Sequence record: MW749003.1
Length of the DNA: 64,000 nt
Strand: one strand, 5' to 3'
Below are positions 18,815 through 64,000 of the stretch, in pieces (the first letter of the stretch is position 1; the number at the start of each line of letters is the position of its first letter). Made by a program: the position numbers and the translations under genes. Below the pieces are notes generated by a model, which saw nothing but the letters and a program-made list of their open reading frames with translations, had not been told where the DNA came from and did no database searches.

Positions 18815-18837
18815 TAGAGTCTACACATCCTTTTCTG

Positions 18838-21171
18838 TTATTTTAATCCTTTGTAATTTACCTTATCATACGGTTCATTACAATCGATTAATATATTGTT
18901 ATTTAAGTAAGGCAACACTAGTGATAAATTTTCGTTCAAATAAGTTAAAAACTCAATACTACCAATTTCATTGCAGTCAAAATCACAATCTTTATCCTGT
19001 ATAAATTGTCTATCTACTTTTGTATTAATAAGATAAGACCTGCCAGGATTAAATAAGGAAATATTATCCTCAAATCTCCGTTCATTATAGGATCTGTTAC
19101 AGTTAACACTTATATCATGATTGAAATAGGTAGGTAATTTTTTCATATAATCCATAACTACTGGACTTTCTTTTAAACCAGTAAAAAGATTATTGTTATT
19201 TGAATCTAATTCGGGAGCAATATTATTTTTAATCATATTAAATAGTTGCTCAAAATATTGATATTTATCTTTCAATTGATAAATGTATTTAAGTCCAATA
19301 TATTTATCTTGATCAGTTTCTTCTATAGCTTCACTTGAATGAGTTTTTAACCATTCTTCAATGAATTGATCTTGACCGATTCTCTTTGACTTGATATCAT
19401 CTTTTGAAGGATATTTTTTATAGAGTTCTATTAGTCTTATAAGAAGATCATCTTCTTGATAATGAAAAGTAATCATTATATTTTTTCTGGTTCCAATATT
19501 TTTTAAAATAAGTGATTTAGAGTTTATGATATCATATTGTGTACTATTTAACTTCTTATTGTTGGCATAAATAGTAAAAGTTCCATCTATTAAAGGATAA
19601 GAATCATCTTGTAGAGTTATTATTGCCCTGTTATCCTCTCTCTTTGGAACTTCACTAAAGAAAAAGTATGAATTTTTCATATAATCTCTAAAAGTTAATT
19701 CAATTTTAGAACCAAAATGAGTCATATCTTTAAAAAGAATCATACTTGGAATTTGATTATGAAGTTGCATATTAATTAATGCAAAATCATCATTGGGAGT
19801 TAACCGATATCCATTAACAAATACCTCTACATTTTCTATATCTTCCATAAATTCTGTAACTACTTCACCATTACTTGTCACATGAGAAACAGGAACAAAA
19901 TAACATGGAACTTGATAGTAATTTGCCATTAAGTTAAAAGCATCAGTCTTAAAGAACATTGATTCAGTGATATTATTGGAAACTACCATAATCTCATTCC
20001 CAATTTTCGGAATGTAATTATCTTTTATAATTACCTCTAGAGAAAAACGATCTTCTGTAAAGTAATTAACAATAATTTTAGTTCTTTTAGGATTAACACG
20101 TTTCCATGAGTTACTATTTTTGAATCGAACATAAACTGAAAAATCTCTATGAGAGAAATATTTTCCAATTCCATCTGTTTTAACAGTAATTCCCTTTGTA
20201 TATAGATTCTCAACATCTTCTTTTGTTTGAATAATATAAGTACATTTAATTTCTTCGTAATCAATTAATGGGTTTCTAAAAGTTTCCAATTCTATAGTTG
20301 AATCATCTTTTATATCACCCTCTTTTAAATACGAACGGCTTATTCCATCTAACTTATTTTGAGAATTATTGTCTCGGTGAAATATCTTTTTACCATCAAC
20401 ATACGCATTTAATTTATGTCTATCAGATATAAAATGATTTATATCTTTCATAGTAAATTGATACTTTTCACCATTTACCCCAAAATTAGCCTCTTCGCTA
20501 TAAGCATCAAACTTATTAGTTAATAGATATTTTCCCTTAGTACCAGTAGTTAATTTAAATACTCTATTATTTACTGGATTACAAATAAGATTTATTAATT
20601 TTTTAATATAACTAGGATCAATATAATTTTTATTTGTTAATTTATCCATTAAAAATTTATTCATATAACGAATATCGCCATTGATAGTTATTTCTCTTAG
20701 TTCTTTATAATCTTTATCAATTTTAAATAATATCCCATCTCTATTTGGAAAATAACTGTCCCAAGCTTCATCAACACACCATACTCTTAAACGATAAAAA
20801 TATTCATCATTCTTATAAGTGATAGAAGGTAAATTATCTGTAAATAGTGTATCTGTAATACTGAGAGATTTTTTAAATTTTTCTCCTCTAGTGATTACAT
20901 CGCCGTTATTATCTATAATTTCTATTTGCATGTAGATCTCTAGTTTAGAATAGTTTTTAAAATTCCAAGAGAATTGATTTTTTTGCTTATCTAATTCTCC
21001 AATATAGAAAAGAGGGATTTCCTCATCTTTCTCAGTTGTTGCACCATTATCATCTCTCGCAGTTATAGAAAGGGTCAGATGGGTACTATCAAACCCATCT
21101 GTGTTATAACTGAGAAGTTCATCAATGTCAATAGGTGAATTTAAGAATTCGGATTGAAATCTAATTGACAT
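18838..21171 (-). CDS. Putative baseplate/tail structural protein
   Basis: 777 aa in late structural operon; N-terminus continues the ~200-aa repeat of 21179..23731. Confidence 0.6.
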   Translation of the reverse strand: MSIRFQSEFLNSPIDIDELLSYNTDGFDSTHLTLSITARDDNGATTEKDEEIPLFYIGELDKQKNQFSWNFKNYSKLEIYMQIEIIDNNGDVITRGEKFKKSLSITDTLFTDNLPSITYKNDEYFYRLRVWCVDEAWDSYFPNRDGILFKIDKDYKELREITINGDIRYMNKFLMDKLTNKNYIDPSYIKKLINLICNPVNNRVFKLTTGTKGKYLLTNKFDAYSEEANFGVNGEKYQFTMKDINHFISDRHKLNAYVDGKKIFHRDNNSQNKLDGISRSYLKEGDIKDDSTIELETFRNPLIDYEEIKCTYIIQTKEDVENLYTKGITVKTDGIGKYFSHRDFSVYVRFKNSNSWKRVNPKRTKIIVNYFTEDRFSLEVIIKDNYIPKIGNEIMVVSNNITESMFFKTDAFNLMANYYQVPCYFVPVSHVTSNGEVVTEFMEDIENVEVFVNGYRLTPNDDFALINMQLHNQIPSMILFKDMTHFGSKIELTFRDYMKNSYFFFSEVPKREDNRAIITLQDDSYPLIDGTFTIYANNKKLNSTQYDIINSKSLILKNIGTRKNIMITFHYQEDDLLIRLIELYKKYPSKDDIKSKRIGQDQFIEEWLKTHSSEAIEETDQDKYIGLKYIYQLKDKYQYFEQLFNMIKNNIAPELDSNNNNLFTGLKESPVVMDYMKKLPTYFNHDISVNCNRSYNERRFEDNISLFNPGRSYLINTKVDRQFIQDKDCDFDCNEIGSIEFLTYLNENLSLVLPYLNNNILIDCNEPYDKVNYKGLK

Positions 21172-49012: not shown

Positions 49013-51741
49013 ATGAAAATGGGGGAATATTTGATGGTAACGACAAAAGTAAACAATCAATATAGTGATGAATCAATTGATCTTTTGGAAGGTTTAGAAG
49101 GTATCAGAACACGTTTTGACATGTATGTAGGTGGAAAGGATTCAGCGGCATTTCATCTTGTAAAAGAAGTAGTGGACAACTCTATTGATGAAGCGATTAA
49201 TGGATATTGCACTAATATTAATATTACATATGATGAAAAACTAAATCAAATTTCAATTGAAGATAATGGTCGTGGTCTTCCTACTGGTATTAATAAGAAG
49301 ACTAAAAAACCTACAATTGAAGTACTTTTTACTTATATGCATGCAGGTGGAAAATTTAATAAGGATAGCTTTAAAGTATCAGGCGGTAAGAATGGTATTG
49401 GTTTAAAAGCAGTTAATGCTCTTTCAAGCTTCCTATTGGTTGAGTCATTTCATAATGGCGAACACTATTCAATGGAATTTTCTAAAGGAAAAATCGTCAA
49501 ATCATTAAATAAACTTGGAAATACTACAAAACGTGGTACAAAAATTACATTTATACCTGATGATGAAATTTTAAAACAATTTGCCAAAATTGATCAATCT
49601 CTATTAAAAGAGGAATTAAACAAGAGAGCATATATCAATGCTGGTCTTGAAATTAATTTAAAAATTGGTAAAGAGAAAACTACTTTTAAACATGATAACG
49701 GAATTATTGACTATCTTAATGATATTAATACAGATCAAATTAATGAACCAATCAATTTTGAATTTACTGATAAAAAGGGAAATATTTATGAAGTAGTATT
49801 TAACTATGCTAATGAATCAGGAGAAAATATTAAATCATTTGTTAATGGTATCTCAACAAGTAAAGGTACTCATGAACAAGGTTTTAAAACAGGACTAACA
49901 GTGGCATTACTTGAATTTATTAAAGAAAATAATCTATTACCTAAAAAGTTAGAAAAACTAGAAATTAAGGGTGATGATATTCGAGAAGGCTTATATTCTA
50001 TTATTAGTCTTAAACTCTTAGAACCAGAATTCCGAGGACAAGTAAAAGATGAATTAAGTAATAGTGAAGTACTTGGGGAATTAAAAAAGGCTACTCATGA
50101 AAAGACAAAAGATTGGCTATCAAAAAATATTGATATTGGTAAAAAGATTGCAAATCGTATTATTGCATTTGCAAAGGGTAGAAAAGAAGCTAATGCAATT
50201 AAAGACAAAATTGTAAAAGTAAATGGTAATTCTTCTGGTTTATCATTTAAATCTGATTTCCCTGATTGTGATAGTAGAGATATTACAAAAAACGAAATTA
50301 TTGTTATTGAGGGAAATTCAGCTGGAGGTAGTGTACGTAATGCTAGAATTTCAGAAATTCAAGCTGTATTCCCATTACGTGGTAAACCATTAAATGCATA
50401 TGGGTTAACTCATGCTAGAATCCTAGCAAACAAAGAATTTAAAGAACTAATTAAAGTAATTTTTGGAACAACTGATATTAAGAATATTAGTTATGATAAT
50501 ATTAGATATGGTAAAATTATTATTTTGGCAGATGCCGATGATGACGGTGAAATGATTTGATAGCTGTCAAAAAACCTGATTAATTGCTGGAACATCCTTA
50601 GAGTTTCTATTACTAACTTATTATAGTGATATAATAAGGGCTGAGTATTATCCTCAGATATAGTAATAATATAGAAAATTGGACAATCAGCAGCCAAGTA
50701 TCCATTAAATTATGGATAAAGGTTCAACGACTATCGAAACCACTTTATCAGATCGTTGTGAAATGCTAGATAAAGACAAGGGAGTAGAGTACAGCCAAGT
50801 GGTAGAGGTGTAGAGTAATAATCTAATAATTCCTCTTTAAATGGAAATGTCAGGCGCTGTATTTAAGCGAAGATATAGTCTCATCTCTATAGAAATATAG
50901 AGCAGTTCATAAGAGAACGGTATGGAATTAACGACTCCATATGAAGATTGTGTATCATATTACTATGTTGCTTCTTGCATTTTTATATGAGCATTTTCCT
51001 AAATTAATTGAGGATGGAAGAGTATATATTGCACTCTCCCCATTATATCGTGTTAGAAAAAATAAATCCGATAAATATCTTTATTTCAAGAATGATAAAG
51101 AGTATGATAAATTTGTAATTAAAGAGATTGGAAAGAAATATAAACTTGATCCAATTTCTCTTAGTAAATTCATTACAAACGGAAAGAAATATACAAGTTT
51201 ATTTGATAGTATTAGACATAGATATAATATTGACATTGATGTATTAAATATTATTGAAAATCATATGAGTGTAAATAATGATATTCGCACTAAAGATATT
51301 GTCTCAGATCTAAAAGATATTGATCTAGCAGTTACAAAAGAAGGAAAAGATCTTAAAGTAGAAGGTTTATACAGAGATACTTGGCATAAACTCATTATTA
51401 ATGATGAATTTGCTAAACATATTGAAGAACTTTCAGCGGTATTTAATGATTTAGACGTAGTAACAATTGAAGATGCAAAAGACGGTCATATTGTAAAAGA
51501 AGATGAATATATTTATAATGCATTAAACTTTTTAAATAATTCAATTACTTTTGTCAGAAACCGTTTTAAAGGATTAGGAGAAGCAGATGCTAATGAGTTA
51601 TTTGAGACTACTCTTGATCCAAAGAAAAGAGATTTAGTTCAAGTCAATATTAATGATTTTGAATCTACAGATGAGATCAATAAGATTCTATTTGGGAATA
51701 ATGCTGATTTACGTAAAATGTTTATTGATAAATATTTGTAA
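49013..51741 (+). CDS. gyrB: Type II topoisomerase B subunit (GyrB-like), spliced join(49013 or 49034..50548, 50953..51741)
   Basis: EVVDNSIDE, DNGRG, HAGGKF, GGKNGIG, EGNSAGG, PLRGK, spliced ADADDDG-YHITMLL, RFKGLGE. Confidence 0.93.
50549..50952 (+). mobile_element. Group I intron (ORF-less, 404 nt) in gyrB TOPRIM motif
   Basis: P1 UGACGGU/GCUGUCA; P10 UGAUA/UAUCA; canonical core; terminal G at 50952. Confidence 0.92.
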
Positions 51742-51770
51742 AATTACTATTTCATTTAGGAGGAGAAATA

Positions 51771-52415
51771 ATGGCAGATATTAAATTAGTTGATAAAGAT
51801 ACTGATTTATCTAATTTAAAACCAATTGGTTGGGATTTGAAGATTAATGGAGTAGATTTTGACGTATATCGAATTAATGGATATAATCATTCTATTGGTG
51901 GTAAATGGGGAAAAAATTGTTATTGGGCTTGTCCTTCCAATGAGAAACCAACTTATGAAAATCTTATTCAATTTAGTGGTGATGCTCCTACTTGGGGTGT
52001 TACATTTGACAGAATCAATTATGTTAAAACTAAATGGGATGAAACATCAGTTAATGCTAATGGTAATTGTTGGATAACTCGTAATGGTCAAAAATTTTAT
52101 AGAATAAATGCACGTTATTTAGATTATGGATTAGCAACTGCACAGCATGTACTAGTAAAACTATTAGAAGATTGTCCACTTGATTTGCATATGAGAAACT
52201 GGAAAGAAAAAGCTATTGGTTATAAGATTTGGTATAATAATCAACCAGCCAAAATAACTGATATTACTAGTAACAATGAACTTTGGATTGTACCAGATGG
52301 TATTTCAAAATTTGAAGCACCCAAACATTATAAAGATCCTGAAGATTATTTGGATTATGAAGATGGAATGCTTGTTGATTTACTATCACCAAATATTTAT
52401 TGGTTTAGAGATTAA
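51771..52415 (+). CDS. Hypothetical protein (Trp-rich)
   Basis: 214-aa ORF, AGGAGG RBS. Confidence 0.7.
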   Translation: MADIKLVDKDTDLSNLKPIGWDLKINGVDFDVYRINGYNHSIGGKWGKNCYWACPSNEKPTYENLIQFSGDAPTWGVTFDRINYVKTKWDETSVNANGNCWITRNGQKFYRINARYLDYGLATAQHVLVKLLEDCPLDLHMRNWKEKAIGYKIWYNNQPAKITDITSNNELWIVPDGISKFEAPKHYKDPEDYLDYEDGMLVDLLSPNIYWFRD

Positions 52416-53667: not shown

Positions 53668-54609
53668 ATGGGTAAAAAGATTAATAAAGAAATATTAGAA
53701 AAAATAATTAAAGAAAATCCTGATTGGTCGCAAAAACAAATAGCTGATCATTTAAATTTATCTATATCTTATATTGGACAATTAATAAAAAAATATAATA
53801 TTGATTATAAAGATAAAAATATAAATTACACCATAAAAGAGGAATTAACAAAAATTATAAATGAACATCCTGATTGGTCGCAAAGAGAAATAGCTGAACA
53901 CTTAGGGACGGAAAAATCTCATGTGAGTCAATTAATTAAAAAGTATAATATTGATTATACTATAAAAAAGAAGAATAAAAAAATAATTATTTCAAAAGAA
54001 AAATTAATTGAAATTATTAATGAACACCCTGATTGGACACAAAAACAAATAGCTGACCATTTAGGAGTTGTAGAATCCTATATCGGTAGGTTAATAAAAA
54101 AGTATGATATACTATATGTTAAAAAAGGAAATCAAAGCAGGAATAAATTTATGGAAAAAAATTTAATTTCACAGTATTTTATGAATGAAGAAGTTATGGC
54201 AGATTTATTATTTTCAGTAATTAAGAATAATGAATTAAATCAAAAAGAAATAGCTGATCTATTAGTAAAAAGATTAATTAATGAATATGATCTAAATTAT
54301 AAATTAAAAACTATAACTAAAGATGATTTATTGGATGTAATTAAAGAGCATCCTGACTGGACACAAAAACAAATAGCTGATCATTTCCTAGCTCTTCCAA
54401 ATACAATTAATTCTATACTAGTAAGAAATAACATCAATCAAAAAGAAATTAGAGAAGAATATATGGTTGAAAAATTAAAAGAATTAATTAAAGAGCATCC
54501 TGACTGGACACAAGCTCAATTAGCTGAACCACTAGGAATTACAAAAACATATGTAAGGAATTTAATTATTAAATATAAATTAGAATATAATAAGAAGAAA
54601 TTAAAATAA
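53668..54609 (+). CDS. Multi-HTH repeat DNA-binding protein
   Basis: Five E[HN]PDW[ST]Q..[IL]A repeats plus one degenerate copy. Confidence 0.75.
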   Translation: MGKKINKEILEKIIKENPDWSQKQIADHLNLSISYIGQLIKKYNIDYKDKNINYTIKEELTKIINEHPDWSQREIAEHLGTEKSHVSQLIKKYNIDYTIKKKNKKIIISKEKLIEIINEHPDWTQKQIADHLGVVESYIGRLIKKYDILYVKKGNQSRNKFMEKNLISQYFMNEEVMADLLFSVIKNNELNQKEIADLLVKRLINEYDLNYKLKTITKDDLLDVIKEHPDWTQKQIADHFLALPNTINSILVRNNINQKEIREEYMVEKLKELIKEHPDWTQAQLAEPLGITKTYVRNLIIKYKLEYNKKKLK

Positions 54610-54612
54610 TTT

Positions 54613-54627
54613 TAAAGTTTATATTAT
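54613..54627 (+). promoter_or_regulatory. Putative early promoter
   Basis: TAAAGTTTATATTAT upstream of the MoxR gene. Confidence 0.55.
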
Positions 54628-54653
54628 AAAAATGTAACAAACTAGATAAATAA

Positions 54654-55883
54654 TTGGGAATAGAAATGGAGAGAGAAATTATTATGAAAATGTCAAATCT
54701 AATCAAAGCAATCGATATTACAGTTCAATCAGGTTCAGTGCCTATGGTTATGGGTCACAGTGGTATTGGAAAATCAAGTATTGCAAAAATCTATGCAGAT
54801 TTAATTCAAGAAAGAGAAAATAAAGATGTAGTATATGTTGAGTTATTTGGTTCTGTCCTTAAAGAAGGTGAATTAACTGGTATGCCAATTAATGTCACTA
54901 AAAACTATAGCGGAGAAGAATTAAATGTAACAACATATACTATTCATACTGCAATTAGAAAACTATGGGAAGCAAATGAGGCAGGTAAAATTCCACTATT
55001 ATTCTTAGATGAATTAAACCGTTCTGATATTGCAGTACAACAAGAGTTAATGCAATTAATTCTTACGAAGCAAATTAATGGAAATCCATTACCAGAAAAT
55101 ACTATTATGATTGCGGCAGGAAATCCAGATTCTGAAGATGATGATGGAATTGACTATCAAGTAAATACTATGAACTATGCTTTAAGAGATCGTTTTACTG
55201 ATCTTCATTTAGAAGTAGACTCTGACGAATGGATTAAATGGGCATTACAACAAGTATCATTTTATGATAATGATGACAATCTAATTAAGACAGATTCTAT
55301 GATCCACAAGAATATTATTGAATTTATCACAAATGATCCTCTTCAGTTACATATCATTAATGCTGAAAATGAAGGTAAAAATCCAACTCCTCGTGCTTGG
55401 GAAAGAACTTCTGATGCATATAGATATTTTGAAGAGAACTATGATATGGAAGACAGTGATAATAAAAGAGCTTTCTGGGGAGTAGTAGAAGGAAATCTTG
55501 GGAAAAATACTGCTATTGCATTTAGAAGTTTTATTGAAGAAAATTCCAAACCAATGATTAATCCAAAGACTATTATTAATAATAAAGATTTATCTAAAGA
55601 TACAAAGCTAATCGAAAAAATTAAAAATGAAACTATGGCAAGACAAAATCTATTAACTCGCTATGTATATATTCATATTGGTAATAATATCGATAAATTT
55701 AAAGAAAAAGAGTTAAATAACTTTATTACTTATCTTGATATTATTCCTGAAGAACTGCTAATGATGGCAATTAGTGAGATTAAGAGAAATCCTAATGATA
55801 ACATTAGTTCTATTTTTGAAATTTTAAAAACTAATCAAACTTTTATTCAAAAGTTTGTTAATATCATTCAAAATTTAAAATAA
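54654..55883 (+). CDS. MoxR-like AAA+ ATPase
   Basis: GHSGIGKS, LFLDELNR, AAGNP, ALRDRF, TPRAWER; true start may be a downstream ATG. Confidence 0.88.
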   Translation: MGIEMEREIIMKMSNLIKAIDITVQSGSVPMVMGHSGIGKSSIAKIYADLIQERENKDVVYVELFGSVLKEGELTGMPINVTKNYSGEELNVTTYTIHTAIRKLWEANEAGKIPLLFLDELNRSDIAVQQELMQLILTKQINGNPLPENTIMIAAGNPDSEDDDGIDYQVNTMNYALRDRFTDLHLEVDSDEWIKWALQQVSFYDNDDNLIKTDSMIHKNIIEFITNDPLQLHIINAENEGKNPTPRAWERTSDAYRYFEENYDMEDSDNKRAFWGVVEGNLGKNTAIAFRSFIEENSKPMINPKTIINNKDLSKDTKLIEKIKNETMARQNLLTRYVYIHIGNNIDKFKEKELNNFITYLDIIPEELLMMAISEIKRNPNDNISSIFEILKTNQTFIQKFVNIIQNLK

Positions 55884-55909
55884 TAGAGATGTAAAAAGGG
55901 GAAGTAAAA

Positions 55910-57325
55910 ATGTCTATTCTTAATAGTGATAATAAAAATGAAATTTATAAGTATCTAAGATCAGTATATATTAAAGCAGATGCTCCTTCAGTTCAAGTCT
56001 CAGAAAATAATCAAAAGTTAATAGAGAGATATTTCTCTCTATTAACTACTTCCTTGATCTTAAATGATCGGGATGGAGATAGTAGATTCTATGCTTATTT
56101 TTTGTCCTCTGTTAAAAGAACTATTATTCATGATCAGTATTTTGCTCCTGCCGCAGTATATTATGATGATAATAGAATGACATTCGTGTTATTATTAAAT
56201 CCATATAAATTATTCTTATTTGAACAAGATGAGATCATTGCTGTACTAATGCATGAATTACTTCATGTTGCAAATAGCCATATCTATAGACACAAAGTTT
56301 TATCCACTAAATATAATAAACTTGACATGCAAAAAGTTAACATTGCAATGGATTGTGCAATTAATCAGTTTATTAAAAATTTACCTAATGGTACAATTAC
56401 ACTTAAATCAGTTAAAGAAATGACCGGAGTAAAGAATATTAGATCTAAGGCAAATTTTGAATATTACCTAGAATTATTATTAAAGAGTAAGAAAGCCAAT
56501 AAAAATAATAAATCTAATGGTCAAAGTTCAAAAGATCCTAATGAATTAAATGATAATGATGTTGATTCTGATGGAAATCTAACCGAAAGTGGTAAAGAAA
56601 AAAGATTATCACAATCAAGAAATCATGCTCATGATAAATGGGATGAAATTGAATCTAGTAAAACAGTAGAGAAAGAGATGTCAGAGAAATTAAAAGATAT
56701 CCTTCAAGATATTAAAAATAGAAATAGAGGTAATCTTCCTAATAATATGGAAAGTATCTTGCAATCATTATTAGGTAAGCAAGAAATTGCATGGCAGAAA
56801 ATTTTTAAGAATATGATTGGTGGTTTAAAAGTTCCATTTAAGAGAACTCCTATGCGTAGAAGTAGAAGACAACCTGATAGACCTGATGTTCTAGGAAGGA
56901 TCTCGGACAGAGAATGTAAAGTTGCAGTTGCTTTGGATATGTCAGGATCAATGTCAAATGAGGAACTAGCATGGTCGCTTAATGAAGTAATTGGTTTATT
57001 AAAAGGAAAGAAATCAACCGTTACCATCATTCACTTTGATTCAGAAGTTGGAACAGTCTATGATGTTAGAAAAAAGAATGATATTAAATTTAAAAGAGAC
57101 AAAAATGGTGGTACAGAATTTTCACCTGTTATTAGCTATGTAAATAAGAATTTACCAAAAACAGATGTACTAGTAGTCTTTACTGATGGCTTTGGTGAAT
57201 ATGAATTACTAGAAAAACCAAATTGTCAAATGTTATGGATTATTACAAGAGGAAATAACTTATCCGTTCGAAAACCATATGGCAAAGTAAGACGTAATAA
57301 TTATAAGGAGGATAAAAATGAATAA
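55910..57325 (+). CDS. Metallopeptidase-like (HExxH) + vWA domain protein (DUF2201-like)
   Basis: MHELLH, NIAMDCAINQ; MIDAS ALDMSGSMS, GGTEF, VFTDG. Confidence 0.88.
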   Translation: MSILNSDNKNEIYKYLRSVYIKADAPSVQVSENNQKLIERYFSLLTTSLILNDRDGDSRFYAYFLSSVKRTIIHDQYFAPAAVYYDDNRMTFVLLLNPYKLFLFEQDEIIAVLMHELLHVANSHIYRHKVLSTKYNKLDMQKVNIAMDCAINQFIKNLPNGTITLKSVKEMTGVKNIRSKANFEYYLELLLKSKKANKNNKSNGQSSKDPNELNDNDVDSDGNLTESGKEKRLSQSRNHAHDKWDEIESSKTVEKEMSEKLKDILQDIKNRNRGNLPNNMESILQSLLGKQEIAWQKIFKNMIGGLKVPFKRTPMRRSRRQPDRPDVLGRISDRECKVAVALDMSGSMSNEELAWSLNEVIGLLKGKKSTVTIIHFDSEVGTVYDVRKKNDIKFKRDKNGGTEFSPVISYVNKNLPKTDVLVVFTDGFGEYELLEKPNCQMLWIITRGNNLSVRKPYGKVRRNNYKEDKNE

Positions 57326-57515
57326 AGAAATAAAAATTAATTGTTTTAATTTATTATACAGTGATTACATAAAAAGAGGGAATTCTGGAATTAAATATAA
57401 TGATTCTAAAGATATAGCTGATAAACTAACCAGTTATCATACAAAATTAGTGCGTATTATTGGGACAGGACAATTTGGATGGAGTTTTAAATTCTTAAGG
57501 AGAAAGCTAATATGA
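57318..57515 (+). CDS. Hypothetical protein
   Basis: 65-aa ORF overlapping both neighbours, GGAGG RBS. Confidence 0.5.
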   Translation: MNKEIKINCFNLLYSDYIKRGNSGIKYNDSKDIADKLTSYHTKLVRIIGTGQFGWSFKFLRRKLI

Positions 57516-58735
57516 TTGATAAATTAAATAAACTTGGATTTAAGTTAGATATAGACAATGAAGCTTTATTAATAGAAGATGATTTTGTACAAAATCATCT
57601 TCCATCACATATTTATGATGTATATAAAGAGTTAGATAAAGGCTATCGCTACCAACCAAATAAAGTTATAGATTATATTAATATACGTATGTTTTGTTTA
57701 AGAGACGATCAATTAATCTATAATTGGTATTTTCATGAGAAGCTTTGTGCTTTTCCTAGAGGATCAAGTTGGATTACTGAAAGATATGAACCAAGAATTA
57801 CTATAATTAGTTTAATAATATTAAATAAATTAATTGAAAATAATATAAAATTTAAGATAAATTTTCCTAAATCCCTTAGACAAACTGATACAGGTAAAAT
57901 TATACATGAGTGTTATTATAAGATTTGCAATATTAATACTATAAAAGCAATGAAATCAAGTATAGACTATAAACTTATTTTTAAACAAGATCTCGCACCA
58001 ATATATCGTAAAGTATTAGTATATTTATTTAATAATAAAGAGAATAGAGATTACTTTTATAATTACTATGATGTTCAAATCCCAACTAGAAATAATTCAA
58101 TTTATACTAGTTTTTCTAAAACTCATTTATTATTTGGATTTAACAGACCTGATATTGATATTTTAAATATTAAATTCTTAATGCAAGATTCACTTGTTGA
58201 TGGTGGAATTACTCTTGATCTTAAAACTGATTATGACATATTTTATGATGATGAGGAGTTAAATAATAAAGAAAAAATTAATTCTTATTTTCAAGAATTA
58301 TATGATGATTTTAAAATAAGAATGAAATCTAATTTCTATACGGCTTATAATCCAATAGATAGTTCTTTTTTATCTAAATATACTTTTAATATTAACAATA
58401 GTTCATTACATTTATTATTAAATAAAGAAGATTATAGAAATTTTTTACTAAGTTTCAAGTTCATTAATCGACATGAAAAGTCTTTAGAGAATATTTCATA
58501 TTTTGATTATAAATTTAAAGAAACTATATGTCGTATAATAATTTATATTATGGAATATCAAAGGGAAAATAAAAATACAATATTATTAAATAGGATTGAA
58601 AAATTCTTAGCAAATGATGCATTTGAGAAATATTTACACTTTAAACACTTTAAAGAAAAATTAGGTTGGCAGAATGAAGAAAGTGAAAGAAGAATAATAG
58701 AATATAATGCAATTGATAAATTAGAATCATTGTAG
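57512..58735 (+). CDS. Paralog-array protein 1 (unknown function)
   Basis: RPDIDIL, DY..FYD, I.SYFQEL.DD, YFDYKFKE, C-terminal YNAIDKLESL. Confidence 0.75.
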   Translation: MIDKLNKLGFKLDIDNEALLIEDDFVQNHLPSHIYDVYKELDKGYRYQPNKVIDYINIRMFCLRDDQLIYNWYFHEKLCAFPRGSSWITERYEPRITIISLIILNKLIENNIKFKINFPKSLRQTDTGKIIHECYYKICNINTIKAMKSSIDYKLIFKQDLAPIYRKVLVYLFNNKENRDYFYNYYDVQIPTRNNSIYTSFSKTHLLFGFNRPDIDILNIKFLMQDSLVDGGITLDLKTDYDIFYDDEELNNKEKINSYFQELYDDFKIRMKSNFYTAYNPIDSSFLSKYTFNINNSSLHLLLNKEDYRNFLLSFKFINRHEKSLENISYFDYKFKETICRIIIYIMEYQRENKNTILLNRIEKFLANDAFEKYLHFKHFKEKLGWQNEESERRIIEYNAIDKLESL

Positions 58736-58747
58736 GAGGTTATTGTA

Positions 58748-59881
58748 TTGAGTGTTATTGAGTATCTAAAAGAATTATTATTAGACGTTGATGAAGATAA
58801 TAATATAATTATAATGGAGGATAATGATCTAGTTAGCAATGAATGTATAGTTAGTATGCTAAATGATATAAATAAAGAAAGAAAATTTCTTTTTGTAGAA
58901 AATGATATCGTATACTTTGATGCATCATTTATAATATATAATGTTTGGTCTTATAAGAAAAATCAAGCAATTAATAGTTATTTTCATTTTAATCATACTG
59001 AATTTGCTAATTATGTTGTTAGTAGCATTGTTAAGAGATTAATAGATAGCGATCATATTACTTTAGATATCATTTCAGATAAATTAGATCAAATGACCTT
59101 ATTAAAATCAGGATTAAGAGTATATCCAGAGTTAAAAACTATTTATAGTGTTGAATATGAGTTAGCAAGTTATATTTATGATCATGAATTTATCAAGAGA
59201 TCTCTTGATAAATCACTCATAGATGATGGTTATAGATCGGCTGATCAATCAGTATTTAGTAAACCCACAATACATGAATCTAAGTTAAACTTAATTAGAC
59301 CGGATTTAGATATTCTTTATTTTCCTTTAATTAAAGATTTTAAGACAAACTCAGCATCTATAACTTTAATGCAAGATTATAGATTATTATTTAATGATCC
59401 AAAATTAGAAAAAGAAGAATTAATTAATGAATACTTTAAAGATATTCTAGAAGATACTAAAAAGAGATTAACAGTTGTTAAAGAACAAAGAGTATATAAA
59501 CATAATCTAAATTCATTTTATATTCATTTAATTCAATTAGTTAGAGGTAAAGTTACTAAAACTAGAAAAAATAAAATAAATAAACAATTATCAACTTCTA
59601 GAGCAAGATTCCTTGGGAAAAAAGAGAATTATTTTGAGGGAAAATTTAGGGAAACAATTTTTAAAATAATACTCTTTATGATTGAATATTTTGAAAAAGA
59701 AAATTTGGAGAAACAATTAGAATCAATTGAAAAAGTATTTTCTTTAAAAATATTTAAGAATTATATTGGTTATTATGAATATGATGATATTCGAATAAGT
59801 TATTTGAATGATGATAAATTTGCTAAAAGCAGAGAAAGAATATCTAGATATGAAGCAGAAGAACTCTTAGAACAACTTTAA
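58748..59881 (+). CDS. Paralog-array protein 2
   Basis: RPDLDIL, DY.LLFND, YFEGKFRE, NYIGY, YEAEELLEQL. Confidence 0.75.
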   Translation: MSVIEYLKELLLDVDEDNNIIIMEDNDLVSNECIVSMLNDINKERKFLFVENDIVYFDASFIIYNVWSYKKNQAINSYFHFNHTEFANYVVSSIVKRLIDSDHITLDIISDKLDQMTLLKSGLRVYPELKTIYSVEYELASYIYDHEFIKRSLDKSLIDDGYRSADQSVFSKPTIHESKLNLIRPDLDILYFPLIKDFKTNSASITLMQDYRLLFNDPKLEKEELINEYFKDILEDTKKRLTVVKEQRVYKHNLNSFYIHLIQLVRGKVTKTRKNKINKQLSTSRARFLGKKENYFEGKFRETIFKIILFMIEYFEKENLEKQLESIEKVFSLKIFKNYIGYYEYDDIRISYLNDDKFAKSRERISRYEAEELLEQL

Positions 59882-59883
59882 TT

Positions 59884-59917
59884 TAGAATGATATCCTTTT
59901 TATAGGATATCATTCTA
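59884..59917. terminator. Bidirectional terminator
   Basis: 14-bp stem TAGAATGATATCCT / AGGATATCATTCTA between convergent genes. Confidence 0.8.
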
Positions 59918-59924
59918 ATAATTA

Positions 59925-60371
59925 TTATACTGCATCTTCGTCAATAACTACTTCTCTGTCAGTCTTAGTCACTTTTTGTAATATCCAAGTAGGAAAAGTA
60001 AGTTCATGAATACCAGTAAAAGTTTGTCTATGATGTTTTAAACATAATACAATTAAATTTCTAATATCATCTACAGTTGTAATAGGTACTTCATTTAATT
60101 TTTTTCCATATCCGTAAATATCAAACAACTCTACGAGTTCTTTTAATTTATCATAGTCACAGACATTTTTCATAGACCAACTACATAGGAAATGATGAAC
60201 TTCTAAATGCTCAGTGTTTTCACATATCCAACATTTATAATGGCCATCTTCTTTTAATCTTTTTTTAGATTTTCTAAACATAGATGATTCTTTTCTTTCT
60301 TCATGTTCAGGAATTAAAACACTTTCTTTTAATGTAGTTCTATCAATATGTTCTGCGATTATTTTACTCAT
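59925..60371 (-). CDS. HNH-like endonuclease
   Basis: CWIC...HLEVHH...NLIVLCLKHH. Confidence 0.75.
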   Translation of the reverse strand: MSKIIAEHIDRTTLKESVLIPEHEERKESSMFRKSKKRLKEDGHYKCWICENTEHLEVHHFLCSWSMKNVCDYDKLKELVELFDIYGYGKKLNEVPITTVDDIRNLIVLCLKHHRQTFTGIHELTFPTWILQKVTKTDREVVIDEDAV

Positions 60372-60391
60372 ATTACCACTCCTTCTAGCTA

Positions 60392-60429
60392 TATTATTAT
60401 GTTTAAAAAAATTTAAAAATATATATTAT
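60392..60429. promoter_or_regulatory. Divergent late (minus) and early (plus) promoters
   Basis: Minus AACA TAATAA TA (60392-60403); plus AAAAATATATATTAT (60415-60429). Confidence 0.55.
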
Positions 60430-60476
60430 ACTTTTGATACTAAATAATTTGAGAAATAATATTAGGAGGACTATTT

Positions 60477-60646
60477 ATAACAGATACTCAAAAACTAATT
60501 GAATTAGGTTTTGACTTTGATTCACAAGGAATATTTATTTTTGATGAATCTAAAGAGTCAAAGATATAATTAATAGTAATGAGTTTTCTAGAAGTATGAA
60601 GAAAATTAAAGAATATGAGGCAATTAATATAATGGAATCATTATAA
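60477..60646 (+). pseudogene. Internally deleted remnant of a paralog-array gene
   Basis: AGGAGG RBS, ATA-initiated 30 codons resembling family N-termini; out-of-frame tail NSNEFSRSMKKIKEYEAINIMESL matching the family C-terminus. Confidence 0.65.
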
Positions 60647-60662
60647 ATATGGAGGATGAGAA

Positions 60663-61892
60663 ATGGATATAAAAAAAGAATTAGAAAAATTAGGAATTGT
60701 ATTAAAAAAGGATGAAACTTCTTCAAAAAATAGTTATAATTTATATATGACTAAGGATGCAGAAGAAAAACTTATCCCATATCATGAAAGACTTATTATA
60801 GAGAGATTAAATACTCCTTTTACTCTTTATCAAACTGATTCAGGGCAACATATATTTAAGCTACACTTATTTAAGTTAATTGATAATAAAATAATAATAG
60901 ATATTGAAAAATTATCTATACAAACAGAATATTCTAATTTAGAATATATGGAGATTCTTATATTTCTCTCTGTAACAGAAAAATTATTAGACTATAATTT
61001 TCCTTTGTCATTTGGAAATAATTTATTTCGTAATTATGTCTTAAACTCATATTGTATGAGCGAGAATCTAATTGAAGAAAATTTAAATAATATCATTAAG
61101 TATCAAAGTAATGATTTATTTAATGATAATGATGACGCAACACTAGAATACTATATTGACATGCGTGTATCTATAATTAGATCTAAAGTTGTTAGAAGAT
61201 GTTATAACCTAGATTATTGTACTAATAATAGATTTATTTCAAATCCAGTTTATAGATATTTTAATGATATAAATGATGAAAAAATAAATTTATATCGTCT
61301 TGATTTAAATCTTTTTTATGTTCCATTTGCTAATGTTAATTTTGGAAATTCTCATATTTCAGGGTTATTATTAGATTACATCATTTTAAATAATGATCAA
61401 AAATTTGAAGCTAAAGATAAGATTGATAAGTATTTTGATGAGTTAGTAGATGATTTTAAAAAAAGATTAGAATTAGATCCATTAGAATTATTTAAAAATT
61501 CGTCAACTCGTAGTCGTGGTCCATATTATAATATAGCATTTAGTCTTACTTATGAAGCTAATTTTATTAAAACAAAATTAAATTTTTCTCCCTCTCATCA
61601 ACATCCTTTAAACAAAAAAAGAAATAAAAAAGGCGTTTATGGTATTGATTATTTTGATAGTAAACTGAGGGAATCTTTATTTAAAGTTATTACAATCTTA
61701 ATAAAACATTTTGAAACTTTAAATCAAAACTCATTTTTAGAGAAAATGGAAAAGACATTAGCTACTAATGAAATACAAAATTATATTGGTTATAATGTTT
61801 ATCCAGAATTATATCTTAATAATCCACAATTCAAAAATAGTTTAAAAAGAGTTAGACAATATGAAGCATTAAGAATATTAGATTCTATTTAA
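60663..61892 (+). CDS. Paralog-array protein 3
   Basis: RLDLNL, DY..LNND, IDKYFDEL.DD, YFDSKLRE, NYIGY, YEALRILDSI. Confidence 0.75.
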   Translation: MDIKKELEKLGIVLKKDETSSKNSYNLYMTKDAEEKLIPYHERLIIERLNTPFTLYQTDSGQHIFKLHLFKLIDNKIIIDIEKLSIQTEYSNLEYMEILIFLSVTEKLLDYNFPLSFGNNLFRNYVLNSYCMSENLIEENLNNIIKYQSNDLFNDNDDATLEYYIDMRVSIIRSKVVRRCYNLDYCTNNRFISNPVYRYFNDINDEKINLYRLDLNLFYVPFANVNFGNSHISGLLLDYIILNNDQKFEAKDKIDKYFDELVDDFKKRLELDPLELFKNSSTRSRGPYYNIAFSLTYEANFIKTKLNFSPSHQHPLNKKRNKKGVYGIDYFDSKLRESLFKVITILIKHFETLNQNSFLEKMEKTLATNEIQNYIGYNVYPELYLNNPQFKNSLKRVRQYEALRILDSI

Positions 61893-61903
61893 GGGGGATA
61901 AAT

Positions 61904-63136
61904 ATGATTAAAATTGAAGAAAGATTAAAACAGTATAAAATTAATATTAGAAATAATCAACTTTATTTGAGTGAAGATAGCGCTAAATATATTTTAGATA
62001 GAAAATTATTAGATTATTATAATTATATATTAAATGAATCTAATAAAAGTGAATATTTATTTAAATATAGTCTTACTGCCCGTGGAATAAGAATTGATAA
62101 TGATAATAAAATAATTGTTGAACCTAATCTCATGGTATATCAGATACACTGGGGATGGACAAATCCACCTGAAATTAATACAATAATTAAAGTACTCATT
62201 ATAAGTGAATTAATAAATAAATTGATGGATGAAGGTTATGAAGTATTTTTAGGTAATAATACATCAAAGGAAAGAAATCTTGAATTATTTAGGTGGATGC
62301 AAAGTCAATATAATAAAAAGCACATATTATCTAGTATTGATAATTCTTTAAATGCTAGAGAAGTATTTAAAGACATATCTGAGTATTTACATATTTCAAC
62401 TAGAATGCTAAGTGATAGAATTCTCAGGAATAGTTATACTAAGGAATATGTAATTAATGCGAGACCCGCTAAGGCTTTTAGACCACCATATACATTATTC
62501 AATATCTGCTTTCATGATTTGGAGCTAGATTCTAAATTGAATAGATTAGATCTTGACTTATACTATATGCCTTTTATTAAAGATATTGTTAATAATCAAT
62601 TTGGTATTGCATTAATGAAAGACTATGTTCTTTTAAATAATGATAGAGAGCTTGAAAATTTTGATAATATAGATAAATATTTTGATGAACTATTACAAGA
62701 TGCAGAAACAAGATTACCGATAATATCTAATATTGAAATTAAAACTAAATCTACAGCAAGTGTATATTTTCAGCTAATTGATATTAAAGATATAAGACAA
62801 GTTACAATTATTAAAAGAATAAAATCAAAATATAAAGTAACTTCTAGGAACAAACATCCATTATCAAAATATAAAACCTTAAAAGGTTCTCAATATTTTA
62901 GTGCAAAATTGAGAGAATCACAATTTAAAGCACTATTATTAATGATAAAATACTTTGAAGAACATTGTAATAAAAATGATTTAGCTAGAGCAGAAAAAAT
63001 ATTATCACTTAAAGAAGTTCAAAATTATCTTGGCTATGAACACTATAAGCATTTATATGAAAATAATCCAAAATTTAAAGATAGTTTTAAGAGAGTAAAA
63101 GATTTAGAAGCTATTGAATTATTAGAGAATTTATAA
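61904..63136 (+). CDS. Paralog-array protein 4
   Basis: RLDLDL, DY.LLNND, IDKYFDEL.QD, YFSAKLRE, NYLGY, LEAIELLENL. Confidence 0.75.
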   Translation: MIKIEERLKQYKINIRNNQLYLSEDSAKYILDRKLLDYYNYILNESNKSEYLFKYSLTARGIRIDNDNKIIVEPNLMVYQIHWGWTNPPEINTIIKVLIISELINKLMDEGYEVFLGNNTSKERNLELFRWMQSQYNKKHILSSIDNSLNAREVFKDISEYLHISTRMLSDRILRNSYTKEYVINARPAKAFRPPYTLFNICFHDLELDSKLNRLDLDLYYMPFIKDIVNNQFGIALMKDYVLLNNDRELENFDNIDKYFDELLQDAETRLPIISNIEIKTKSTASVYFQLIDIKDIRQVTIIKRIKSKYKVTSRNKHPLSKYKTLKGSQYFSAKLRESQFKALLLMIKYFEEHCNKNDLARAEKILSLKEVQNYLGYEHYKHLYENNPKFKDSFKRVKDLEAIELLENL

Positions 63137-63150
63137 TTGGGGGATTTAAA

Positions 63151-64000
63151 ATGCCTGAATTTAATTTAATGGAAAATGTAATTGAAGTAATAGAGGTTCC
63201 AAGTGGTAGTAAATCTGGTTTATTCCCAAGAAAGAGAGAATCTGGTTTTGATAAAATATTAAGGCAAGAAATTGTACCAGCTCAAAAGAATCATCTTGAT
63301 ACAATTATAAAACGAATGAAAGCAATAGGCTATGATAAAATTGCTGTACTTAACACAAATATTCAATTTTATTGGGAGATAACTACAGTCGAATATCCTT
63401 TTAATAATGATAATCAGCTACATATAACATTAGTTAATAAAGAAAATACTATTGAATATTTAAGTTTAGTAAATCTTAAATCTGGATTTTTTTCAGATAG
63501 AAAATTTAATAACCTAACAAAGAGACTCCAAGATTCGGGAGAAGATATTGGAAAGATTATGAGAGCATATATAGAATATAATTTACCATATTACTTTTCG
63601 AGAAATTATGAGAAATATGAAAAGGAGAATGAAGAAATGAAAAAAGAAAATAATAAAGTTAACGATAAAATTAATAATAAAGAGGTAAATATTCTACTAG
63701 CCCCATTGGTAAAAGATTTCTTAGGAACAATTGGTAGTATTGCAATATTAAGAAATTTTAGTGAGTATTATGAAGACAAGTATATTGAGGATAAAGATAA
63801 AGTTGATAAATATTTTAATGAATTAATTGATGACGTAAAAATATTATTAAAAACCAAAAATGATATTACATTAATTGATCCTAATCCAAAAAATAATAAG
63901 TATATTAATCTTGTTAAGATTATGAAAGGAAAAGAATCAGTATTTAAGAATATTAAAAGAAGCCTATCAATTAATAAAAATAGTAAACATCCTTTATTAA
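63151..64000 (+). CDS. Paralog-array protein 5 (runs off window end)
   Basis: ATG 63151 after GGGGGA; frame open to end; NILLAPLVKDF, VDKYFNELIDD, KHPL. Confidence 0.7.
   Translation, partial: MPEFNLMENVIEVIEVPSGSKSGLFPRKRESGFDKILRQEIVPAQKNHLDTIIKRMKAIGYDKIAVLNTNIQFYWEITTVEYPFNNDNQLHITLVNKENTIEYLSLVNLKSGFFSDRKFNNLTKRLQDSGEDIGKIMRAYIEYNLPYYFSRNYEKYEKENEEMKKENNKVNDKINNKEVNILLAPLVKDFLGTIGSIAILRNFSEYYEDKYIEDKDKVDKYFNELIDDVKILLKTKNDITLIDPNPKNNKYINLVKIMKGKESVFKNIKRSLSINKNSKHPLL

Follow-up and report, generated by a model that had tools for sequence, protein, structure and literature searches.

Positions 54613-64000 of a 64,000-nucleotide stretch of sequence record MW749003.1 (the whole stretch is hereafter called the window; position in the record = window position + 124000) are a 100% match to Bacillus phage vB_BspM_Internexus, a giant Bacillus phage of 252 kb in the genus Takahashivirus (PBS1/AR9 group), and are 96-97% identical to the corresponding regions of phages AR9, PBS1, and vB_BsuM-Goe21 (Goe21). 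An earlier reading of the letters alone (the original prediction) had placed two early promoter motifs, a MoxR ATPase gene, a gene for an HExxH-vWA (von Willebrand factor A) protein, a 65-amino acid (aa) open reading frame (ORF), at least five paralogs, and a remnant in this region, and all of them were found there to within a few bases; an HNH endonuclease gene between the two sub-arrays of paralogs was missing from it. PBS1/AR9-type phages are classic models of uracil-DNA, transduction, and two-RNA polymerase biology, although a function has yet to be assigned to the majority of their early genes. We compared the annotated stretches of Internexus, AR9, Goe21, and PBS1 and combined this with an ORF map and profile scans of the window. 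Judged by sequence, the paralogs are a real, uncharacterized family without relatives, that is, a new protein domain family, which is defined here; its members are modular, and one of them is tied to the host-takeover repertoire of phage SPO1.

A paralog family with a shared C-terminal domain

A hidden Markov model of the family recovered the five window paralogs with E values of 1e-46 to 6e-125 and found nothing else significant in the 64 kb. Overall identity of the Internexus paralogs to the first one is 21-28%. All-against-all comparison resolved nine slots, A-I, all of which are present in Goe21; slots A (226 aa) and B (232 aa) are short forms, 41% identical to each other, and slots C-I are long forms. 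To compare the halves of the proteins, the five Internexus paralogs, two long forms found only in Goe21, and four members from the Bacillus pumilus phage vB_BpuM-BpSp (BpSp) were split at the motif R-x-D-[LI]-x-[IL]. BLAST detected only one of 55 N-half pairs (slots G and H) versus 46 of 55 C-half pairs; among the Takahashivirus long forms, none of the 21 C-half pairs went undetected (25-40% identity). The contrast between a variable N-half and a conserved C-half, which had been read from the window paralogs by eye, is therefore upheld, and the C-terminal motifs quoted at the time are all visible in the paralog alignment.

All members terminate at one aligned position with the tail L-[E/D/N]-x-[L/I]. 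The shared C-terminal domain spans ~200 aa, and the two short members consist mostly of this domain. Several members also show, on inspection by eye, a short motif in the N-terminal part (L-x-[EK]-L-G-[FI]-x-[LF]-D type), suggesting that the paralogs are probably homologous end to end, with the front and middle parts very diverged. The members were searched for membrane-type hydrophobic segments, a consistent charge, and a conserved Cys/His pattern, and none of these was found. The invariant and near-invariant columns among 14 sequences are mostly aromatic or charged, from which we infer that the domain serves interaction or structure and is not enzymatic.

AlphaFold2 models built on the family alignment reached a mean predicted local distance difference test (pLDDT) score of 64 for slot H, with 85-94 over the final ~90 residues, and of 65 for the short form AR9 g030 (predicted template modelling score 0.71); the C-terminal domain is predicted to be all-alpha in both. 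The Foldseek check for a known fold that had been recommended with the original prediction returned no match in the Protein Data Bank (PDB) at E <= 0.001 for the full-length and C-domain models, and since both models are of moderate quality (mean pLDDT ~65), these fold negatives are weak evidence. In a search of BFVD, the only significant matches were to members of the family itself (AR9, PBS1, BpSp), and the family profile gave only non-significant matches to SarA among PDB sequences (E 0.22). Pfam, NCBIfam, and PADLOC contain no model matching the family, and PHROGs divides it among phrog 13583, 31241, and 38865, which carry no function (E down to 3e-180 and 2e-190).

The front part of slot I has a recognizable relative. 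Its N-terminal 140 residues match the Pfam family SPO1_gp41 (PF25749) over model positions 1-140 of 140 with an E value of 2e-77 and 258.5 bits (cut-off 27), and are 37.6% identical to SPO1 Gp41 (36-40% across gp41 of SPO1 and other Okubovirus phages). SPO1 Gp41 is an early 154-aa protein of the host-takeover module which, when expressed alone, cuts growth of B. subtilis by at least 50% (PMC6873191; PMC13401047). The PF25749 match is absent from the other four window paralogs, from Goe21 slots A, B, C, and F, and from the BpSp members, and a search for relatives of the N-halves of slots D, E, and G outside Takahashivirus found none. SPO1 gp38, gp39, gp40, and other takeover proteins were also considered as distant family members, and sequence comparison was negative. 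The proposal that the N-halves are aimed at host targets thus gains a concrete case in slot I, the only front half for which relatives outside the genus were found.

Distribution, age, and loss of family members

The family is narrowly distributed. A HMMER search of 1.84 billion representative proteins with the C-domain profile returned 11 matches, all of them from PBS1-type phages, short contigs of such phages, or BpSp, and tblastn located the family in eight of 50,697 phage records. A word-indexed protein search with slot H retrieved the AR9 orthologue only, and a pattern scan of IMG/VR likewise found AR9 only. BpSp carries at least four members flanking its own ATPase/vWA pair, one upstream past two helix-turn-helix (HTH) genes and three downstream. 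These are more similar to particular PBS1-type slots (E 1e-10 to 4e-8) than to one another (about 1e-4), indicating on this evidence that the duplications are old and preceded the split between the PBS1-type and BpSp lineages.

Within Takahashivirus the slots are unevenly retained. Goe21 has nine members and a metagenome contig eight, together with a 31-aa leftover, while five each remain in Internexus (D, E, G, H, I), AR9 (A, E, G, H, I), and PBS1 (B, E, G, H, I, plus fragments of C and D). Every strain retains E, G, H, and I, and A, B, C, D, and F are each missing somewhere, so individual members, five of the nine slots, are dispensable across strains. Slot F has been reduced by one large internal deletion common to Internexus, AR9, and PBS1, and the Internexus remnant additionally shows one start-codon substitution and one single-base deletion. 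The 65-aa ORF occupies the place of Goe21 slots A-C, resembles slot C weakly (E 0.003, from a search of a small database), and shares seven of its first eight residues with slot B. Pfam and PHROG scans gave it no family match, and its position and faint likeness to slots B and C suggest that it is probably what remained when slots A-C were lost, rather than a gene in its own right.

The array had been described as expanding. Between phages at 96-97% identity, however, the arrays differ by deletions that have left remnants, so that the array is instead eroding in single strains. Nor is there support for recent diversification: the ratio of nonsynonymous to synonymous substitution rates (dN/dS) between orthologues is 0.12-0.32 in both halves, save for a value of 0.74 in the N-half of slot D that reflects very few changes, so that orthologue dN/dS does not point to diversifying selection having acted recently on the front halves, and the affinity of BpSp members for particular slots likewise points to old divergence. 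The values indicate that the retained paralogs are functional and under purifying selection, somewhat less constrained than the neighboring ATPase (0.02) and zincin-vWA protein (0.09).

The early transcription units, the ATPase/zincin-vWA pair, and neighboring genes

The features of the locus are collected in Table 1.

Table 1. Features of the Internexus locus in window coordinates
Feature	Position	Strand	Remarks
Early (virion RNA polymerase) promoter motif	54615-54627	+	Identical to AR9 promoter upstream of g028
AAA_5/MoxR-like AAA+ ATPase, INTERNEXUS_206, 399 aa	54684-55883	+	Pfam AAA_5, phrog_1297
Zincin (HExxH)-vWA protein, INTERNEXUS_207, 471 aa	55910-57325	+	PF13203 + PF09967
65-aa ORF overlapping both neighbors	57318-57515	+	Site of three family genes in Goe21
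Paralog slot D, 407 aa	57512-58735	+	Kept in Goe21; fragment only in PBS1
Paralog slot E, 377 aa	58748-59881	+	Kept in all relatives
Hairpin, 15-bp stem, between convergent genes	59883-59918		Likely terminator of first early transcription unit
HNH endonuclease, 148 aa, convergent with array	59925-60371	-	phrog_8048, E 3e-47
Second early promoter motif, exact consensus	60417-60429	+	Mapped AR9 start site upstream of g033
Slot F remnant	60477-60646	+	Intact slot F is 445 aa in Goe21
Paralog slot G, 409 aa	60663-61892	+	
Paralog slot H, 410 aa	61904-63136	+	AlphaFold2 model made
Paralog slot I, cut by window end	63151-64000	+	381 aa in record (fetched-stretch coordinates 17539-18684)

In the early promoters of AR9 the consensus AAATATATATTAT is separated by 6 nt from a start at G, and primary start sites have been mapped upstream of AR9 g028 and g033 (PMC5312081, supplement file 3). 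The second motif of the window is an exact copy of this consensus; the first has two mismatches to it and is the same sequence as the mapped AR9 g028 promoter. The predicted early-motif layout therefore agrees with experiment in AR9, the source of all start-site data, and as both promoter regions are near-identical in the two phages, the Internexus starts would by homology lie at ~54634 and ~60436. Transcript levels in AR9 at 5/20/40 min are 88/464/378 for the ATPase gene g028, 77/595/465 for the zincin-vWA gene g029, 25/103/87 and 80/147/152 for the first sub-array (the latter being g031), 161/1364/474 for the remnant g033, and about 26-41/131-252/121-142 for g034-g036 (PMC5312081). Together with the start sites, these time courses divide the AR9 locus into two early transcription units, the first of which comprises the pair and the first sub-array. 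The HNH gene holds a conserved position inside the paralog array in all four relatives, at 98-100% identity, and in AR9 its RNA-seq signal (14/40/215) rises late, unlike that of its early neighbors (PMC5312081). Rfam and tRNA scans of the window gave no matches.

Identification of the pair as a MoxR-like ATPase and an HExxH-vWA protein is supported by the profile searches. The ATPase matches Pfam AAA_5 over model positions 4-139 of 139 with 30.1 bits (cut-off 22) and phrog_1297 with an E value of 9e-78, and a Walker A motif (GHSGIGKS), a Walker B motif (LLFLDE), and an ALRDRF-type motif are readable in its translation. The AR9, PBS1, and Goe21 proteins match it at 100% identity and the BpSp protein at 61%; its ORF has in-frame alternative starts at 54666 and 54654. 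A search with Pfam AAA_3 gave no match and phmmer against the PDB gave nothing, and a profile of four phage ATPase homologues yielded a weak partial match, limited to the Walker B-sensor 1 region, to 2r44 (E 0.012), which the search tool names merely "uncharacterized protein" and which we take to be a MoxR-type ATPase. An identity as an NtrC-like, enhancer-binding "transcription factor" was rejected, as the match to Sigma54_activat covers the P-loop region only and no stretch passes alone.

The vWA gene starts 27 nt past the ATPase stop codon. Its product matches PF13203 (DUF2201_N, 56.1 bits, cut-off 23.2) and PF09967 (DUF2201, 60.6 bits, cut-off 26.4) in N-to-C order, with the vWA domain at residues 338-460 of 471 and the N-terminal zincin as its sole fusion; the BpSp protein is 45% identical. 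In an alignment with five distant phage homologues (including those of Bacillus phage BpSp, Staphylococcus phage SA1, Vibrio phage phiKT1024, and Escherichia phage A51.2), H115, E116, H119, and H124 (HExxH and an extra His) and the metal ion-dependent adhesion site (MIDAS) residues D343, S345, S347, T402, and D426 (DxSGS/GT/D) are invariant, suggesting that the zincin-vWA protein is probably active. The ATPase-vWA gene pairing also occurs in BpSp, SA1, and A51.2, and tblastn found the zincin-vWA protein in 313 phage records, including rV5-like, 121Q-like, N4-like, Vibrio, and Staphylococcus jumbo phages. As regards the pair, the term "undescribed module" cannot stand, since MoxR + metallopeptidase-vWA pairs have been described in "group 2.2" jumbo phages, with a proposed role in virion assembly (Iyer et al. 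2021, PMC7824862). Both pair proteins are moreover already named in the AR9 record. Elsewhere the ATPase is labeled "putative transcription factor" (NtrC-like; Internexus and PBS1 records) and the vWA-protease "HNH endonuclease" (RefSeq PBS1 and AR9, and phrog_1314); because Pfam gives AAA_5 and DUF2201_N/DUF2201, these labels look like propagated annotation errors.

Several observations were made on the surrounding genes. The gyrB gene (49013-51742) reads as two ORFs of 515 and 266 aa, split by ~405 bp that are absent from the single 768-aa gene of AR9; it is likewise split in BpSp. The interruption may be an intron or intervening element, and Rfam gave no match to it. Another ~646 bp after gyrB (51771-52415), holding a 214-aa ORF with no Pfam match, are also absent from AR9. 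Just upstream of the first early motif (53668-54609) lies a gene for a 313-aa protein with about five tandem HTH repeats, each containing an EHPDW[ST]Q..IA.HL-type stretch. The PBS1 copy lacks ~150 nt, a hint that the number of repeats is variable, and BpSp has two shorter HTH genes at this position. The gene after the array, past the window end (fetched Internexus stretch 18726-19244), is labeled "putative sigma 70 sequence" and matches Pfam Phage_ProQ_C_like (E 8e-11) instead. In BpSp, a second and unrelated tandem family of four paralogs (~245-294 aa, 28-43% identical) lies a few kb downstream of the locus (fetched stretch 17487-20873).

Possible functions and relation to known systems

On balance, the paralogs probably make up a multigene family specific to the PBS1/AR9 and BpSp lineages of Bacillus jumbo phages, whose products would be early, cytoplasmic accessory proteins directed at the host. 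Their variable parts would bind differing targets in the host or in host defense, and the shared C-terminal domain would provide a common, non-enzymatic function such as self-association, localization, or docking to a partner shared by all members. The MoxR-like ATPase and the zincin-vWA protein would form a separately conserved and probably catalytically active remodeling/protease pair whose function is independent of the family; the pair and the first sub-array would share the first early operon. Several points weigh against this interpretation. Six of the seven front parts have no recognizable relative, so "host-directed" is a generalization from the single case of Gp41. The models are mediocre (mean pLDDT 64-65), and a fold relationship or an active site could have been missed. 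Finally, every family-bearing genome has the pair beside it, and in Internexus, AR9, and Goe21 the vWA stop codon is overlapped by the gene that follows, an arrangement that fits a closer functional tie between family and pair.

Such a tie was at the center of the original prediction, in the form of a three-part system in which the vWA domain captures the C-domain or tail of a paralog and the ATPase remodels it and/or the zincin cleaves it, thereby activating, releasing, or timing the N-terminal effectors. Besides the overlap of the vWA stop codon, the pair and the first sub-array have one early promoter and one likely terminator hairpin in common, and in both lineages the family lies no more than about 3 kb from the pair, also in BpSp with its 61% (ATPase) and 45% (vWA protein) identity to Internexus. 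The common acidic-hydrophobic tail at the same aligned end is the kind of peptide that a MIDAS site could bind, the HExxH and MIDAS residues are invariant, and in the bacterial MoxR-vWA ternary systems, too, a third protein combines variable regions with a conserved C-domain (PMC7159879). The linkage demanded of such a system holds in every genome with the family but extends to only eight of the 313 phage records with the pair. The pair contexts inspected elsewhere contain no comparable paralog array, and in the nearest outgroup with the pair, the Staphylococcus jumbo phage SA1, the downstream genes are unrelated and a family member was not found beside the pair; three of these downstream genes were tried as cryptic members or mutual paralogs and gave only short motif-like matches (hhalign E 0.14-0.44). 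The pair, being widespread without the family, has no need of it, and the linkage, confined to two Bacillus lineages, is weak evidence because both are syntenic over the entire gyrB-gyrA region. In BpSp, one member lies upstream past two HTH genes, and between the vWA gene and the next member there are three unrelated genes; the second sub-array is under its own promoter, and the slot adjoining the vWA gene has been lost in PBS1 and in a metagenome relative. Setting the synteny of the lineages and the dispensability of the vWA-adjacent slot against adjacency and the shared promoter, we regard the three-part system as unlikely. We hold similar doubts about a further version, in which the pair would be a phage-encoded hub that docks, remodels, or cleaves changeable early effectors via the C-domain or tail. 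Such a hub would be the viral equivalent, used for offense, of the bacterial MoxR-vWA ternary conflict systems, and the Gp41-type module would be among its payloads.

A function of the pair as a virion-assembly chaperone or protease, with the paralogs as assembly cofactors or scaffolds, would follow the role proposed for MoxR + metallopeptidase-vWA pairs (Iyer et al. 2021, PMC7824862) and could draw on an ATPase homologue of 29% identity in purified particles of the Staphylococcus jumbo phage DC4, a finding that its authors say needs confirmation (PMC10638138). The AR9 genes, however, are under early promoters and transcribed from 5 min, lie among replication and early genes and not in the structural module, and include none annotated as an AR9 virion protein, and five of the nine family members are dispensable across strains; we therefore consider this role improbable. 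Least credible is that the array is decaying duplicated DNA without current function. Remnants and deletions are frequent and transcript levels are below those of the pair, but the retained copies are intact ORFs with dN/dS values of 0.12-0.32, four slots occur in every strain, and recognizable members persist in BpSp despite the 61%/45% identity of its ATPase and vWA proteins, which makes wholesale decay very improbable.

A family of host-directed accessory proteins, the reading that we favor, agrees with the gain and loss of members at the strain level, which is typical of host-interaction genes. Should the pair act on the paralogs, these would be the first client set for a phage gene pair that is very widespread (313 records) but functionally blank; otherwise, the paralogs would be an ordinary though undescribed accessory multigene family.

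The pair resembles the MoxR AAA+/vWA chaperone pairs RavA-ViaA, CbbQ-CbbO, and NorQ-NorD, and that of virus ATV, in having an ATPase with Walker A/B motifs and an AAA_5 profile adjoining a vWA protein with a complete MIDAS, but differs in the N-terminal HExxH zincin of the vWA protein, in the lack of an AAA_3 match, and in being encoded by phage early genes. With the published jumbo-phage MoxR + metallopeptidase-vWA pair (PMC7824862) it shares the two-gene architecture, the domain order, and the Pfam and PHROG 1297/1314 families; there, the pair belongs to group 2.2 and a role in virion assembly was proposed, whereas here it is transcribed early and heads an operon leading into a paralog array. 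Closest in concept, as regards a possible mode of action, are the VMAP ternary conflict systems of bacteria (Kaur et al. 2020, PMC7159879), which likewise combine a MoxR-vWA core with one or more proteins that have a conserved C-domain and a variable rest. VMAP-C is described as alpha+beta with ~7 strands, whereas the C-domain of the present family is modeled as all-alpha, a comparison made by description only; in VMAP systems variable effectors are fused C-terminally to the vWA protein, which is not the case here, and here there are many paralogs per pair, encoded by a phage and not by a cell. Pfam searches found no sequence relationship of the family to VMAP, and no direct comparison with a VMAP-C profile was made. 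Because of the all-alpha C-domain, the absence of C-terminal vWA effectors, and the many paralogs per pair, the family is not a member of the VMAP class.

The comparison with the SPO1 takeover proteins is confined to slot I, as the other paralogs have no similarity to any of them. Gp41 is a stand-alone protein of 154 aa in SPO1, whereas in slot I the corresponding domain is fused to the C-terminal domain of the family. The slot I N-domain is nevertheless a full-length homologue of Gp41, and both are products of early genes of B. subtilis phages.

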